This document shows, one piece after another, positions 46,637 to 61,417 of a stretch of 64,000 nucleotides of DNA. Origin of the DNA: Macrostomum hystrix (lineage: Eukaryota; Animalia; Platyhelminthes); assembly GCA_950097015.1 (NCBI GenBank), contig CATNEN010000039.1, forward strand, positions 8,742,001-8,806,000. The letters run 5' to 3'. A program made the position numbers and the translations under genes. The notes beneath the pieces are model-generated. The model was not told the DNA's origin. It was given only the letters and a program-made list of their open reading frames with translations, and ran no database searches. How positions within the stretch are numbered: position 1 is the first letter of the stretch; each line of letters opens with the position of its first letter.

Positions 46637-48452
46637 ATGGATCACGATCACTCGAAAATGATTAAATCTTCTGGGTCAAATAATAACGCTATGTCCATGC
46701 CAGGCATGGCTAGCAATGGATCTGGTCACATGATGATGGTGAGAAGATCCTCATATCGTTCGCACATTCATAAATTCTCCCAGATCCTCAAATATTTTAC
46801 AGATCCTCAAATTCTTTACTGATCCTCAAATCCTGTACAGATTCTCAAATCCTTTACTGATCCTCAAATCCTGTACAGATTCTCAAATCCTTTACACATC
46901 CTCAAATCCTGTACAGATCCTCAAATCCTTTACAGATCCTCAAATCCTTTACAGATCCTCAAATCATTTACAGATCCTCAAATCCTTTACAGATCCTCAA
47001 ATCCTTTACAGATCCTCAAATACTTTACAGATCCTCAAATACTTTACAGATCCTCAAATCCTTTGCAGATCCTCAAATCCCTGGCAGAATCTCGAATCAT
47101 CATATCTTTTTTTACCATCATCAAAGTCATCTAAATTCTTGTCCAGCCATCTAAAAATGTCATACTTGGCGCCACTTTTCATTACAGATGTATTTCCACA
47201 CCATGCTAAGCGATTACGTTCTATTCAAGCCATTACTTGTCAACACTGCTGGTGGTAAGAGCCTGCGGATTTTGCTTTGTTCTCGCTAATATACGCGTAT
47301 TACGTGTTATAAAGGCAAACTGGGTAGCCAGTTTGTTTATAGTCTACTAAAAACACGAAACCCCGAGCGTTGCCCTGCCTTTTAGTAATAAAATTCTGCT
47401 GAAGTACTTTAAAAGATTAATGGTTTGAATTTAGACGCATGCATAGAGAAAATTATAAATTCCGTTTTTTGCTAATTTGACTACTTAAAGTAGAGCGCAT
47501 CGTTTTTATGCTCCAATATATGTGTTTTTAAGTGTTTCTTATAAATAATATATTTCAACCTACACCGAATTCCGTCTACCAGCCATGATTGGCGCCTGCA
47601 TTGTGATCTTCATTTTGGCTCTGCTGTATGAAGGCTTGAAGGTTCTGCGTGAGCGCCTTCTCATTGCTGGTACACTGAGTCGTCGAAATGGTCGCTCATC
47701 AGCCAACTTTGTGCCCGATGGCACCCAGCCTGAGACCTACGTGCCCAAGGGCCGGTGAGGACTCGGCGCTTTGCTTGAGAATCGAAATTGCGATGGATTG
47801 CTAGTCTAGACAGTTAGATGCACATGAGAAGAATGGATTGCTAGTCTAGTCAGTTAGATGCACATGAGAAGAATGGATTGCTAGTCTAGTCAGTTAGATG
47901 CACATGAGAAGAATGGATTGCTAGTCTAGTCAGTTAGATGCACATGAGAAGAATGGATTGCTAGTCTAGTCAGTTAGATGCACATGAGAAGAATGGATTG
48001 CTAGTCTAGTCAGTTAGATGCACATGAGAAGAATGGATTGCTAGTCTAGTCAGTTAGATGCCCATGAGAAGAATGGATTGCTAGTCTAGTCAGTTAGATG
48101 CACATGAGAAGAATGGATTGCTAGTCTAGTCAGTTAGATGCACATGAGAAGAATGGATTGCTAGTCTAGTCAGTTAGATGCCCATGAGAAGAATGGATTG
48201 CTAGTCTATGCTGTTAAAGCAGGTGCAAACAATCCCTTCGCCCGCAGTGACCTGTCCATGCTGTCGCGAGCTCACGCAATTCAGACCCTGCTGCACGCGG
48301 TGCAGATTACCCTGTCGTATTTGCTGATGTTAGTGTTTATGACCTACTCTGTGTGGCTGTGCCTGGCTGTGGTCCTTGGCTCCACGGTCGGCTATTTTCT
48401 GTTCGGCTGGCTTCGCCGCACCACTATTGATATCTCTGAGCACTGCCACTGA
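46637..48452 (+). CDS. CTR1: high-affinity copper transporter CTR1/SLC31A1; exons 46637-46738, 47188-47254, 47583-47754, 48248-48452
   Basis: His/Met-rich N-terminus MDHDH..HMMM|MYFH, LYEGLK, MLVFM (MxxxM), GSTVG (GxxxG), C-terminal HCH; phase-consistent GT-AG introns. Confidence 0.95.
46780..47085. repeat. 19-bp minisatellite in CTR1 intron 1
   Basis: agatcctcaaatcctttac. Confidence 0.9.
47794..48208. repeat. 40-bp minisatellite (~10 copies) in CTR1 intron 3
   Basis: tggattgctagtctagtcagttagatgcacatgagaagaa. Confidence 0.95.
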
Positions 48453-55387: not shown

Positions 55388-56165
55388 ACTACCCTGCCGC
55401 CCCCCTGCCACCTATAATGCAACCTTGCCACCCACCTACTAGCCTACCCTGCTACCCTACTAGCCTACCCTGCTACCCTACTAGCCTACCCTGCTACCCT
55501 ACTAGCCTACCCTGCCGCCCACATTCAAGCCTACCCTGCCGCCCACATGCTAGAGTACCCTGCCACCCACATGCTAGTCTACCCTGCCGCCCACATGCTA
55601 GCCTACCCTTCCGCCCACCTACTAGCCTACCCTGACACCCACCCAATAGCATACCCTACCGCCCACATGTTAGTCTACCCTTCCGCCCTTGCGCCCACCT
55701 ACTAGCCTACTCTGCCACCCACCCACTAGCATACCCTACCGCCCACATGCTAGTCTACCCTTCCGCCCACATTCAAGCCTACCCTGCCGCCCACATGCTA
55801 GTCTACACTGCCACCCACATGCTAGTCTACCCTGCCACCCACATGCTAGCCTACCCTGCCGCCCACCTACTAGCCTACCCTACCGCCAACCTACTAGTCT
55901 ACCCTTCCGCCCACATTCAAGCCTACCCTGCCGCCCACATGCTAGTCTACCCTGCCACCCACATGCTAGTCTACCCTGCCGCCCACCTACTAGCCTACCC
56001 TACCGCCAACCTACTAGTCTACCCTTCCGCCCACATTCAAGCCTACCCTGCCACCCACATGCTAGTCTACCCTGCCACCCACATGCTAGTCTACCCTGCC
56101 GCCCACATGCTAGTCTACCCTTCCGCCCACATGCAAGCCTACCCTGCCGCCCACCTACTTGGCTG
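55388..56165. repeat. 24-bp C-rich minisatellite upstream of the GPCR
   Basis: ctagtctaccctgccgcccacatg. Confidence 0.9.
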
Positions 56166-56339
56166 CCTTGCCGCCCGCCTTGTTGCCAGCATTGGCGTCA
56201 CCCATTGGCTGTCTCGCAATTGGCTCCCATCTGTTCAGCCCATCTGTTCTTGTTATAAAAAAACTGGCATCATTGCCTATTCATTTTAGCCTCCTCCCTG
56301 AACTGCATTATTGTCTTGAAGTCTCTGAACTAAATCGTC

Positions 56340-59300
56340 ATGTCGACTGCATCGCCATTGTCTCTGGTTTTGAATTACAGCGTGGCAGCACTGACGGAAG
56401 TCGGGAACGTCAGCGCAGCGGAGGGCAAGACCAGTCAATTCGACCCCTACCTACTCTTGGCTGTCGTGCTGTTCATTACAGTCGACATCATCGGCGTGGC
56501 GGCCAACGTGTTCGTGCTGATAGTTCTGCTTCGCAACGACAGCAAGCAGGTGTACGAGATCTTCTGCACCGGACTCGCACTCACTGACCTGCTTTTCCTC
56601 ACCCTGACCGTGCCCATCACCACCCTGCAGTACGTCACGGACGCCTGGCTGCTGGGAGCTCTGCTCTGCAAATTCACATTCTTTGTGGTCACGGTGAGAC
56701 CTGAGGCATGCCTGCTGCTTCAAACCAAGCAGACAAACCAATCACACCACCACCGGAAATCTCCCCGCACAGATGACCGTGGACTCCTCTGCCACCAACC
56801 ACCCCAACCGGAAATCTCCCCGCACAGATGACCGTGTACTCCTCTGCCACCAACCACCCCAACCGGAAATCTCCCCGCACAGATGACCGTGTACTCCTCT
56901 GCCACCAACCACCCCAACCGGAAATCTCCCCGCACAGATGACCGTGTACTCCTCTGCCACCAACCACCCCAACCGGAAATCTCCCCGCACAGATGACCGT
57001 GTACTCCTCTGCCACCAACCACCCCAACCGGAAATCTCCCCGCACAGATGACCGTGTACTCCTCTGCCACCAACCACCCCAACCGGAAATCTCCCCGCAC
57101 AGATGACCGTGTACTCCTCTGCCACCAACCACCCCAACCGGAAATCTCCCCGCACAGATGACCGTGTACTCCTCTGCCACCAACCACCCCAACCGGAAAT
57201 CTCCCCGCACAGATGACCGTGTACTCCTCTGCCACCAACCACCCCAACCGGAAATCTCCCCGCACAGATGACCGTGTACTCCTCTGCCACCAACCACCCC
57301 AACCGGAAATCTCCCCGCACAGATGACCGTGGACTCCTCTGCCACCAACCACCCCAACCGGAAATCTCCCCGCACAGATGACCGTGTACTCCTCTGCCAC
57401 CAATCACACCATCACCGGAAATCTCCCCGCACAGATGACCGTGGACTTCTCTGCCACCAACCACCCCAACCGGAAATCTCCCCGCACAGATGACCGTGTA
57501 CTCCTCTGCCACCAACCACCCCACCACCGGAAATCTCCCCGCACAGATGACCGTGGACTCCTCTGGCACCAACCACCCCAACCGGAAATCTCCCCGCACA
57601 GATGACCGTGTACTCCTCTGCCACCAACCACCCCACCACCGGAAATCTCCCCGCACAGATGACCGTGGACTCCTCTGCCACAAACCACCCCACCACCGGA
57701 AATCTCCCCGCACAGATGACCGTGTACTCCTCTGCCACCAACCACCCCAACCGGAAATCTCCCCGCACAGATGACCGTGGACTCCTGTGCCACCAACCAC
57801 CCCACCACCGGAAATCTCCCCGCACAGATGACCGTGGACTTCTCTGCCACCAACCACCCCAAACGAAATCTCCCCCGCACAGATGACCGTGGACTCCTCT
57901 GCCACCAACCACCCCAACCGGAAATCTCCCCGCACAGATGACCGTGGACTCCTGTGCCACTAACCACCCCAAACGAAATCTCCCCGCACAGATGACCGTG
58001 TACTCCTCTGCCACCATGCTCCTGGGCCTGACCTGCAGCCGATTCCTAGCCGTTGTGCATCCGTGGGAGAATAGAAAAATCAACCCGGCCAGAGCCAAGG
58101 CCGGCTGTCTGTTCGCCTGGATCTGTGAGTCAGCGGTGGACCTTCATAATGATAATAATATTTGCAGGAGAGCTGTGGACATTGGCGTATTAGCTCGTAT
58201 TTTGTGACAGTAGACCCGCAGCCAGCGAGGAGCCAGTTTTGCACATTCCGCTGTCTCCTGAGCACATACTCACATATGAGCACTTACATGGCCCCTGATG
58301 TATTGGGGTCCAATGTAAATGTATGTGTGTATTAGAACACTTAATTCATCCGTGGATACTGAAGGAACCACTGTGCCATCACTCCCATACCGATGTGTAC
58401 TAATTCATACTTTGGCTGGTGTTTCTAGGAAGTTGCTTCATGACATAGATTATGATTATAAGTTCTTGGCTACTGTCATGAACGGTGGGTACTGTCGCGA
58501 ACTGTGGGTACTGTCATGAACTGTGGGTACTGTCATGAACTGTGGGTACTGTCAATACCTGTGTTACTGTCACGAGCTGAGCTGTAGTAGATTAAAAGGA
58601 GCGACATAGGTGATTTGAGTAAACTGCCAAGGCTATGGTATTCACAATTGTGACAATCAATTACCCAGGCTCTAAGGCGAAACCAACTTTCGACTGACAG
58701 TTCTTGATTCAGCCCGAATTCAAGCTGCTGCAGCTGCTCCTTAGTCTCTTTAAACTAGGAACTTGCCCGTTCGTCCTAAGGTAACTCGTCCTAGAAAAAT
58801 CGCCATAAAAGACTTTTTTAGATGGGCTTCGAGACACACCGGCTCAGGCTACAGGCCCGCCATAATCCCTAAGCCGGTGGCTGGATGTGACAAAGGTGGC
58901 ACAGCCAAAAATTTTATCCGCCCTGCAATGGGGAGCATTCGAAATCTGGCGGGATATTCGGCTGGAAAGTAAATCCTCTTGCCAGCGAGTCCTTCCTGTC
59001 GTGTCCATATTGAAAAACTAATGGACACGAAAGGAAAGGAAATTAAAGGGGGATTAAGAAGGGAGAAGCGACTAATTCATTGTCGGCCTTCGTTTTCACT
59101 CGCTTAGGCGCCTACAGATATGATCACCACATCCGTGTCTCGCTTCTATTCAGCCTGGGTGGTCTCTGGTCACTCCATCCGTGTCTCGCTTCTATTCAGC
59201 CTGGGTGGTCTCTGGTCACTCCATCCGTGCATCGCTTCTATTCAGCCTGGGTGGTCTCTGGTCACTCCATCCGTGCATCGCTTCTATTCAGCCTGGGTGG

Positions 59301-60749
59301 TCTCTGGTCACTCCATCCGTGTCTCGCTTCTATTCAGCCTGGGTGGTCTCTGGTCACTCCATCCGTGCATCGCTTCTATTCAGCCTGGGTGGTCTCTGGT
59401 CACTCCATCCGTGCATCGCTTCTATTCAGCCTGGGTGGTCTCTGGTCACTCCATCCGTGCATCGCTTCTATTCAGCCTGGGTGGTCTCTGGTCACTGGTC
59501 ACCACATCCGTGTCTCGCTTCTATTCAGACTGGGTGGTCTCTGGTCGCTGGTGAGGCTTATTAGTTGTGAAGCGTCCTAAAGTTGTCATCAGGCTAGGTG
59601 TTACTGCAATATCTCTCTATTATCATATTATACTCATAATCTAGCTAGAGCTATGCGTGCTAACCAAAATTTTCTATATAAACCGCCCTGGCAGTCGGAG
59701 CCATGCTGAGCATCCCCCAGCCCATCGCATTCGTCGTTGTCGAGGAGGACGGCATCCCAATTTGTCGGGACTCCTTCGAGCTGGAGCGAAGTCGCGTGGC
59801 CAACTCCGTGGCCATCCTGCTGTTCTCCTATGTGCTGCCGTTCTTTGCAATGCTGATTATGAACTGCCTAATCGTCAGGAAGCTGAAGAAAGAGGTAGGT
59901 AGTACCTAGTCTGGAAGAGAAAGGACGTTAGTACTTTGTAACGCTCTTTAGATTTTCTGTTTCGGAACCGTTGTGGATTGGATGAGGCAATGGTGCGTCA
60001 ACCTTGCATGGTATAGCGCGTGCAAAAATGGAACGGGGCAATCAGGCTTGAAATTGCCATAATGTTGTTGCTAGAGCACTGAGGCACTCTGACTCGTGAG
60101 AACATGAATGTGTGTGCACATTTGCCCTGACTTTCTCATCTTCAGAGATTGGGGCTTGGCCTGTAGCTCATAAGCGATTCAGGTGTGATAGAGGTTGCTA
60201 CGGCTGAGATGTCACAATCGATCTAATTTAGTCACTTTCTTCACTTACCAGGACGGCCGGCCTAATGCATCGGACAAGAGGCGTGCCACCAAGCGCCGAC
60301 TGCGCACGAAAGTGACAAAGATGGTGATGCTTGTCACCCTGCTCTACGGCATCTGCTGGCTGCCCACCGAGCTCATTAACTTCTGGTACAACGGCCTGAG
60401 GCACGTGTTCCCGATGAATAACGCCATGCTGGTAGTGAAGATCTGCGCCAACGCGCTCCACTATGCCTCCTGCTGCGTCAATCCGATTGTCTACTCTATG
60501 CTGAGCGGCTCCTTCAAGGCAGCCATCGTCAAGCAGTTCCCCTCCATGGGTCGGCGACTCGCTGGCGGTGCCGAAGAACACGGAGCCGACGACGATGGCG
60601 TTGAACCCAGACGAGCACTCGGATGCATCGACGAGGACCCTACGTGCGCGGTTGTGGCGGCCGGCGGCGACAATTGCGACTGCGGTAGCGGCGATGAGTC
60701 GCCAGACGAGGAGTCGCTTGCCATCGGGGTGAGAACGACCAGGCTGTGA
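56340..60749 (+). CDS. rhodopsin-family neuropeptide GPCR (galanin/allatostatin-A-receptor-like); exons 56340-56693, 57992-58124, 59695-59894, 60252-60749
   Basis: TM1 ..AAN, LALTD, WLLGALLCK, SRFLAVVHP, SYVLP, CWLP, NPIVY; junction phases 0/1/0 consistent. Confidence 0.9.
56755..58015 (+). repeat. ~55-bp tandem array (about 23 copies) of the GPCR intron-1 acceptor plus exon-2 start
   Basis: unit ggaaatctccccgcacag|atgaccgtgtactcctctgccacc-aaccaccccaacc; the last copy runs into coding sequence. Confidence 0.95.
58210..58300 (-). mobile_element. SINE-like element, copy D (3' fragment)
   Basis: reverse complement gtgctcaggagacagcggaatgtgcaaaactggctcctcgctggc. Confidence 0.6.
59125..59548. repeat. 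46-bp minisatellite (~9 copies) in GPCR intron 2
   Basis: catccgtgcatcgcttctattcagcctgggtggtctctggtcactc. Confidence 0.93.
60080..60185 (-). mobile_element. SINE-like element, copy E (fragment)
   Basis: reverse complement ctgaagatgagaaagtcagggcaaatgtgcacac...ctcacgagtcag. Confidence 0.45.
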
Positions 60750-61417
60750 GTTTTCTCCAAGCGTCACGTTTGCTTTGACTCCTCTATTCTACTGTCTTGA
60801 GATGCATTCGTACGGATTCTACACGTTTCAGCTAAACGTATCCAAAACTTGCGTTTAAGACGTTCCTAATTTTGCTGTCAAAACGTTCCAGTAAAACTTG
60901 TTTAATTCTTGTAGCTTATTGCTTTGTAAGAGAAAATTATTTTTTCGGACACTTTATTCGCAAAAATTTCTGTTCCTTATGAAACTTCAAAAAGTTGCTT
61001 TGAATATTTTTTTGTTGAGAAAATGATTGCTAAACTTCTGAATGAAACTAACCGCGTGTTTTGTTCAATTTAGGCAAAAATGCAATATATAGCTCGTACA
61101 TCAATAATCTAGCGATTTATTGAGTTATGGGTAACTGTCGGGCTATGTCAATTGTTAGTGCAGTCACAGTCGTTGTTGTAATAGTTCAGTTTATTTAAGT
61201 GCGCGCGCGCCACCCCCGCCGCTGTTATTTACTTTGATGTGTCTTACACAACCACCCATCCTCCACCCTATTGTTATCTCGTGTGATTGCTGAATCATGC
61301 CTGTCTGGCACAATATATATTGATCGAAGGTGCACGGCTAGAGTTTGCGCTTGTGACTGTCCTGCAACCTGCTCAATGCGTTTGCTTCTGTTCTTCAATT
61401 AACCCACGACTTCACAT

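Follow-up and report, generated by a model that had tools for sequence, protein, structure and literature searches.

In the flatworm Macrostomum hystrix, a 64,000-nucleotide stretch of genomic DNA (assembly GCA_950097015.1, contig CATNEN010000039.1, positions 8,742,001 to 8,806,000 of the forward strand; hereafter the window, to which all positions refer) harbors a four-exon gene for a rhodopsin-type G protein-coupled receptor (GPCR), whose intron 1 is nearly all occupied by 23 tandem copies of a 55-bp unit. Each unit combines the tail of the intron with the first coding nucleotides of exon 2, and the working splice acceptor at the end of the intron is preceded by 22 decoys. An earlier interpretation derived from the letters of the DNA (the sequence-only reading) had proposed that a single nucleotide in the last unit selects the productive acceptor. 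In the analysis described here the array itself is confirmed, whereas the idea of a single-nucleotide selector is plausible but unproven, and the first interpretation is partly supported. With high probability, the locus represents a "mirage" minisatellite, i.e. an intron/exon junction that has been amplified in tandem, the resulting array being spliced out together with intron 1.

The GPCR gene and its exon boundaries

The gene comprises the following parts, given with the evidence on which each boundary rests (TM, transmembrane segment):

56340..56693, + strand: coding part of exon 1, 118 codons between the ATG and the donor, encoding TM1 through the first half of TM3 (open frame, Pfam 7tm_1, homolog; donor G/GTGAGA at 56694)
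56694..57991, + strand: intron 1, 1298 nt, phase 0 (paralog intron at the same codon boundary; colinearity with homolog and Pfam)
57990..57991, + strand: working acceptor AG (paralog acceptor ttacag/ATGACTGTGGTT at the homologous place; X2 contig)
57992..58124, + strand: exon 2 (133 nt), encoding the second half of TM3, where SRF replaces DRY, and the beginning of TM4 (paralog, Pfam, X2 joint 58124 to 59695)
58125..59694, + strand: intron 2, with CTAAC at 59660-59664, its A lying 31 nt upstream of the G in the acceptor AG (X2 spliced contig, sequence)
59695..59894, + strand: exon 3, 200 nt, TM5 (X2 contigs start at 59695; X4 contig carries CTGAAGAAAG before 60250, joining 59894 to 60252)
59895..60251, + strand: intron 3, with CTAAT at 60223-60227, its A lying 25 nt upstream of the G in the acceptor AG (X4 spliced contig, sequence)
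60252..60749, + strand: coding part of exon 4, TM6, TM7 with NPIVY, C-terminal tail, stop (Pfam; contigs of X2, X3 and X4)

Both the Pfam scan, which covered exons 1, 2 and 4, and the homolog comparisons took each exon singly. Exon 1 matches positions 2-65 of the 7tm_1 profile (PF00001) with 41.3 bits and exon 4 matches positions 187-260 with 42.9 bits, while exon 2, which matches positions 67-111 with 25.8 bits, would by itself stay under the cut-off of 30.5 bits. The named homologs are all from flatworms, namely GCR080 of Schmidtea mediterranea, CAH8496236.1 of Heterobilharzia americana and a "galanin receptor type 2" of Cichlidogyrus. The likeness to such flatworm rhodopsin-type orphan or peptide-like GPCRs reaches 45-49% identity for the stretch from TM1 to TM3 and 59% for exon 2, and includes a common FSSA-MLLGLT-SRF-AV-PW motif in TM3 in addition to the 7tm_1 matches of exons 1, 2 and 4. 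A HMMER scan of 1.84 billion representatives yielded no close ortholog, the best match being 53% identical over exon 1, and a word-indexed protein search returned no match at E <= 1e-10 within its length range, longer proteins being outside its reach. Together with the transcript data described below, a real, transcribed, multi-exon class A GPCR gene is supported, in agreement with the sequence-only reading, which had recognized a GPCR gene with an array of copies of its own intron 1/exon 2 junction.

The position of the exon 2 boundary follows from several comparisons. Exon 1 is 49% identical to a Heterobilharzia americana GPCR (P0009), up to residue 128 of the latter, and exons 1 and 2 adjoin without a gap both on P0009 (residues 129 and 130) and on the Pfam profile (positions 65 and 67). 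Since the end of exon 1 lies opposite residue 129 and the start of exon 2 opposite residue 130, a joint to the last AG is exactly colinear with P0009, and use of the penultimate AG would put 18 extra residues into TM3. The paralog, located on G000:C34, shows 62% identity over exon 1 and 87% over exon 2, and its intron 1 interrupts the same codon boundary in the same phase, ending in the acceptor ...ctcctaaaatctctcgcattcattacag/ATGACTGTGGTT with a visibly homologous tail (AAATCTC...CAG/ATGAC). This 3.8-kb intron is devoid of the 55-bp array and contains a different minisatellite instead. Moreover, many database matches of exon 1 are open frames of 130-170 residues that stop about 20 residues past the exon 1/exon 2 boundary, which fits an intron that is old at this position in related animals. 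As judged from the paralog, the flatworm homologs and the Pfam profile, the exon boundary is at 57992 and the coding-contiguous AG is the last one of the series.

Anatomy of the intron 1 array

Tandem Repeats Finder (TRF) reports an array at 56745-58016 with a period of 55, 23.0 copies and 95% matches. The features within and around it are:

56694..56772, + strand: ancestral 79-nt intron, preserved whole as first unit; its AATCAC (56741-56746) lies 28 nt upstream of the first decoy AG (unit list, motif scan, alignment)
56745..58016, + strand: junction ("mirage") minisatellite, 55 bp x 23 (TRF, unit list, alignment, X1 word depth)
56771..57937, + strand: span of the 22 decoy acceptors, with the G of the AG at 56772, 56827, ... 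57882, 57937 (unit list, frame analysis)
57958..57964, + strand: CACTAAC, whose A57963 is the candidate branch point, 28 nt upstream of the G in the working AG (motif scan, substitution count, alignment)

Between 56770 and 57989 the sequence CAGATGACCGTG is found 23 times, corresponding to the 22 decoys and the working AG at 57990-57991. When the intron is cut behind each AG, the first piece is a 79-nt head (56694-56772) extending from the donor GTGAGA to the tail AATCACACCACCACCGGAAATCTCCCCGCACAG. It is followed by 22 units of 54-57 nt with the pattern ATGACCGTG(T/G)ACTCCTCTGCCACC + AACCACCCCA(CC)ACCGGAAATCTCCCCGCACAG, each of which unites 31-33 nt of intron tail with an exact 24-nt copy of the exon 2 start. 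The real exon 2 opens with the same 24 nt and then runs on as ATGCTCCTGGGC. The predominant unit length is 55 nt; it rises to 57 nt in units 13, 15, 17, 18 and 20 and falls to 54 nt in the last unit. No difference exists among units 3-11. In the right half of the array, 55- and 57-nt variants are intermingled like a mosaic, and private changes number about one per unit. At the unit junctions, CACCAAC occurs in 20 units, CACCAAT in unit 13 and CACAAAC in unit 18, whereas CACTAAC is confined to 57958-57964 in the last unit. The corresponding counts of copies, decoys and junction variants in the sequence-only reading, including a weak AATCAC before copies 1 and 13, could be reproduced throughout.

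In a genome-wide search, the 55-bp unit had no second site in the 220-Mb assembly, and a genome-dispersed repeat family was rejected as the source of the array on account of this uniqueness. Its copy number is reflected in a DNA run (X1), in which the word depth reaches 357-1385 in array bins as opposed to 84-93 in the flanking single-copy DNA. This excess of 4-16 times the single-copy depth supports an array of many copies, and contigs of the variant units 15/17 and 18/19 agree with the assembly.

A 24-bp x 31.5 array at 55422-56176 lies about 160 nt upstream of the start codon of the GPCR gene, likely in its promoter or 5' untranslated region. In addition, two pieces of a very high-copy element reside in intron 2 (58199-58232) and intron 3 (60112-60145) of the gene, with a DNA word depth of about 2.3e5 and 6.1e4, respectively, where single-copy DNA has about 88. 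In contigs derived from other genomic sites, these two pieces are linked with a spacing of 0-40 nt.

Transcript evidence

Parts of the gene are present in five public sequencing runs, the contigs of which were placed on positions 57440-60850, that is, on the right part of the array and exons 2-4, with exon 1 and units 1-13 lying outside. The RNA-like run X2 provides a 167-nt contig that consists of 3 unmatched letters, followed by 57991-58124 and a GT..AG joint to 59695. Position 57991 has the same letter, G, as the end of exon 1, and the 3 unmatched letters correspond to the expectation from ...CACG/ATG. The same run contains more contigs on exons 3 and 4, at a low depth over exons (4-7). Furthermore, a contig of run X4 joins ...CTGAAGAAAGAG, the end of exon 3 at 59894, to 60252, and in the RNA-like run X3 the 3' exon is covered at a depth of 22. 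The gene is transcribed and spliced, and the RNA match to the genome breaks exactly at the working acceptor; the sequence-only reading had conceded that an untranscribed gene would undo its interpretation, which is countered by the spliced contigs of X2 and X4 and the 3' exon cover in X3. Compared with the assembly, X2 differs at 58033 (C>G, a synonymous change from ACC to ACG) and at 60624 (T>C, replacing Cys by Arg in the C-terminal tail), hence the X2 sample is not identical to the assembled individual.

Predicted consequences of decoy usage

The reading frame would impose different fates on the products of the individual acceptors. Splicing to the first AG (56772) would remove an intron of 79 nt and add 1219 nt out of frame, and for decoys 1-21 in general a stop is reached 26-94 codons past the junction. 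In contrast, the penultimate AG (57937) adds 54 nt, equivalent to 18 codons, in frame and free of stops. Since it is the only decoy with an in-frame, stop-free product, it is also the only one that nonsense-mediated decay could not clear. The frame analysis thereby bears out what had been read from the sequence alone concerning the first AG and, combined with the colinearity on P0009, concerning the insertion of 18 codons inside TM3. Short introns of 67-128 nt do occur in this genome, as judged from predicted introns of myosin genes. Nothing was found in support of the further proposal that the length of the array tunes productive versus decay-bound splicing.

The candidate branch-site motif of the last unit

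A motif scan identified CACTAAC as the sole YTNAY (57960-57964), and likewise the sole CTRAY, in the 1298-nt intron, placing the candidate branch A at -28 relative to the working AG. T57961 is private to the last unit and constitutes the only private change of that unit. The motif spans the duplication junction, being composed of exon-derived GCCAC(C>T) and intron-derived AAC, which implies that the T is derived and that the motif cannot be ancestral. Among all single substitutions in the last unit, 3/162 create a YTNAY at -45..-9 and 2/162 create a CTRAY; accordingly, the probability that the one change of this unit yields a YTNAY is roughly 2%, subject to the reservation that applies to any post-hoc estimate. 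Weaker motifs of the NTNAY type are present elsewhere, namely AATCAC in units 1 and 13 as well as GATGAC, which opens each unit at a distance of about 51 nt from the AG that follows. As both of these have a U two bases before the A, CACTAAC is unique only under the stricter YTNAY. The original claim that a branch consensus precedes only the true acceptor, about 28 nt upstream of it, is therefore upheld for YTNAY and CTRAY (1 in 1298 nt) but fails for the looser U-n-A pattern.

Regarding the other introns of the gene, intron 2 displays CTAAC with its A at -31 and intron 3 CTAAT with its A at -25, while intron 1 of the paralog has CCTAAAA at about -21. For a broader background, 26 better-scoring predicted introns of the myosin genes of this genome (exons located via Pfam) were compared over the stretch -45..-9 with random control stretches; these intron ends are predictions that have not been verified by RNA, so the following frequencies are rough:

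YTNAY: 20/26 predicted introns, 44% of control stretches
YTAAY: 10/26 predicted introns, 11% of control stretches
CTAAY: 4/26 predicted introns, 5% of control stretches

These frequencies indicate that the branch A in this genome is usually preceded by a U at a distance of two bases, and that a perfect CTAAY is preferred but not required. An open-frame search for short introns in the window, tried as an alternative background, returned mostly repeat noise and was dropped in favor of the myosin introns. By the genome's own standard, branch motifs are scarce in decoys 2-12 and 14-22. Decoy 1, in turn, corresponds to the complete ancestral intron, comprising donor, AATCAC at -28, the same tract and the same AG. 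A literature search on branch-site selection in such arrays yielded nothing relevant.

Proposed origin of the array and choice of the acceptor

Alignment of the units suggests a sequence of events. AATCAC is kept in the original tail and in unit 13, whose tail is nearly the original one, whereas AACCAC is found in the 57-nt and 55-nt units and CACTAAC in the last one. In a genome with so much minisatellite seeding, some arrays would be expected to start on a splice junction. At this locus, an original 57-nt unit, made up of 33 nt of intron tail including AATCAC and 24 nt of exon, was probably duplicated between ACC^A microhomologies, the respective sites being ...CAAACC/AATCAC and ...GCCACC/ATGCTC. 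Slippage or unequal exchange then probably amplified it to 23 copies, in the course of which 57-nt and subsequently 55-nt derivatives, with AATCAC changed to AACCAC, would have spread through the array, the 55-nt form becoming the main unit.

In the transcript, exon 1 (ending at 56693) would be joined to the last AG (57991), removing the whole array and giving rise to a normal rhodopsin-type receptor. The choice of this AG probably rests on two cues. One would be the nearness of the real exon 2, with its sequence beyond +24 and a strong donor 133 nt downstream, which would favor the last few AGs. The other would be the derived CACTAAC of the last unit, committing splicing to the AG that follows. 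Since a branch at A57963 has access only to a downstream AG, the penultimate AG (57937) would be excluded. With decoys 1-21, the spliced transcripts would contain premature stops. The location of CACTAAC between the penultimate and the productive AG is thus a reason to think that the T is more than noise. Whether T57961 has a measurable effect on splicing is a matter of roughly even odds, and its role in selecting the working acceptor is a plausible refinement of the mirage interpretation. A more far-reaching idea, offered tentatively and considered rather unlikely, is that selection shaped the array: the spreading unit would have lost its branch-like motif, leaving 1.3 kb of decoys free of any YUNAY, and the C-to-U change in the last unit would have made CUAAC, a single-nucleotide address label for the 3' splice site. 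If true, such an address label might be a general rule for how arrays of this kind are tolerated.

Weighing of alternative explanations

How the last of 23 acceptors comes to be used can be explained in different ways, depending on how much weight is placed on the T at 57961. In the strongest version of the sequence-only reading, which appears unlikely, the C-to-T change is the main determinant of acceptor choice: without the T the decoys would be used, and with it the branch at A57963 would commit splicing to the last AG. In its favor, tract and AG are nearly uniform across all 23 acceptors, the only YTNAY of the intron, at -28, is private to the last unit and derived there, and the CTAAY motifs of introns 2 and 3 as well as the enrichment of YTNAY before acceptors in this genome are consistent with it. 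It is opposed by the intact ancestral intron at decoy 1, with its AATCAC at the same distance, by the scarcity of CTAAY among the predicted introns, whereby a perfect consensus is evidently not required, and by the GATGAC recurring in every unit. Conversely, position and exon context alone might choose the last AG, the T being a neutral variant of a fast-changing array. This is a serious possibility, albeit one that falls short of being probable. Only the last acceptor precedes the full exon 2, including potential enhancers beyond +24, with a strong donor at a distance of 133 nt, while the decoys carry just 24 nt of exon; first-AG use would entail an exon of 1352 nt, far beyond the usual range of exon definition; and the units in the right half of the array each show about one private change. 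In amphioxus, mirages are reported to leave regular splicing undisturbed (PMC3087553). Exon definition, however, cannot tell the last AG from the penultimate one only 54 nt upstream, the low chance of a YTNAY arising from the single private change of the last unit speaks against neutrality, and given the existence of 67-128-nt introns a first intron of 79 nt should be recognizable across the intron. Overall, position and exon context explain the choice of the last AG equally as well as the branch motif does.

A different explanation abandons the premise that the decoys are largely ignored. Heavy use of decoys would make the array a recent, mildly harmful expansion or a brake, with much of the RNA destined for nonsense-mediated decay and a minority productive. 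In its favor, the first AG completes the intact ancestral intron and is transcribed first, the identity of units 3-11 indicates a recent expansion, decoys 1-21 all lead to early stops, the exon depth in X2 is low, and a contig from the array is present in the RNA-like run X3. Yet all four exons are open and conserved relative to the paralog and the homologs, the sole contig across the edge of exon 2 breaks at the true AG, and no contig linking exon 1 to a decoy was seen among those on 57440-60850, a range that leaves the exon 1 side outside. Such heavy decoy use is therefore held to be distinctly improbable. Still far less credible is an assembly artefact, involving either the array as such or just its copy number and the T. 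It could draw on the lack of X1 cover at 57782-58123 and on the presence of only short contigs in the array, but it was rejected on the X1 word depth and the matching contigs of variant units, and it is further at odds with an ordered variant pattern, which is not that of a collapsed consensus, and with the ubiquity of tandem arrays in this genome.

Several observations nevertheless detract from the picture of a mirage array that is cleanly removed by means of exon nearness and CACTAAC. Run X3 contains an 88-nt contig within the array (57593-57679, depth 3.3), demonstrating the existence of some array-bearing RNA, be it precursor or decoy-spliced. The 3 unmatched letters of the X2 contig match the end of exon 1 but would equally suit, for example, a trans-spliced leader, and are no proof of the partner. 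The failure to see an exon 1-to-decoy joint is to be read in light of the fact that contigs drop rare forms. As X1 does not cover 57782-58123, T57961 rests on the assembly alone, although the hole itself proves nothing; read data, whose lack of support for the array or the T would have refuted the sequence-only reading by its own account, hence uphold the array while neither confirming nor contradicting the T. Finally, the ancestral intron at decoy 1 presumably worked before the duplication, and its being ignored now would be unexplained by a branch-site model.

Relation to known systems and significance

In classical splicing work with engineered vertebrate minigenes, duplicated identical 3' splice sites compete with each other, adjacent exon sequence and branch position decide which AG is used, and scanning takes the first AG downstream of the branch. 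In contrast to these engineered duplications, the present locus offers a natural 23-fold series.

The structure itself is of an already known kind. Mirage minisatellites in amphioxus are described as tandem duplications of an intron/exon boundary, the name stemming from the Adh3 case (Canestro et al. 2002, cited in PMC3087553). According to that account, many copies keep their AG/GT signals, RT-PCR (reverse transcription PCR) shows regular splicing, array length varies between haplotypes, and edge units escape homogenization (PMC3087553). The array in Macrostomum hystrix is a tandem repeat of minisatellite size whose unit includes both an intron end and an exon start, and it shares with its amphioxus counterparts the location of the copies inside the intron beside the authentic boundary, the retention of AG in many of them, and the contrast between homogenized inner units and differing edges. 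Continued regular splicing is supported here only in part, by the X2 contig that departs from the genome at 57991 and runs spliced into exon 3. It differs in its host, a flatworm as opposed to a cephalochordate, and, compared with the amphioxus globin mirages, in copy number (23 versus 3-6) and unit size (55 bp versus 150-160 bp). A further distinction is that the decoys here are without YTNAY whereas the terminal unit gained one, a point that is absent from the accessible text on amphioxus in PMC3087553. What is added here is another phylum and the observation on the branch motif.

As a structure, the array is nothing unusual in this genome and has a named precedent in amphioxus; its value is that of a clean natural experiment, with 23 acceptors of near-identical tract and AG and one private nucleotide making the only consensus branch site. 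The locus could show the relative weight of branch site, exon context and distance in the choice of 3' splice sites in flatworms, and it bears on the survival of genes when minisatellites make up at least a quarter of the genome.

Minisatellites in the surrounding genome

Some 30 separate tandem arrays with a period of at least 8 together account for 23% of the window; in 102 kb of myosin loci the share of such arrays is 36%. Most long introns in both samples contain their own minisatellite. In the paralog of the GPCR gene, intron 2 contains a 20-bp x 74 array, ATCTGTTTATCTCAAAGCTT, that starts about 25 nt past the exon 2 donor (G000:C34, L024 1652-3134). In a myosin gene on G000:C8 (L036 3058-3429), a 15-bp array, TGGGTCAGGTCAGAT, begins right at the predicted donor aactgg/GTCAGG and may be a junction array on the donor side. 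Within the window, a 19-bp x 15.8 array, CAGATCCTCAAATCCTTTA, at 46781-47080 places 16 acceptor-like TTTACAG copies in the intron of another gene, which extends from a donor at 46740 to about 47187. The likely real acceptor of that intron, ttcattacag/ATGTATTTCC, follows about 100 nt past the array and has TCTAAA motifs before it.

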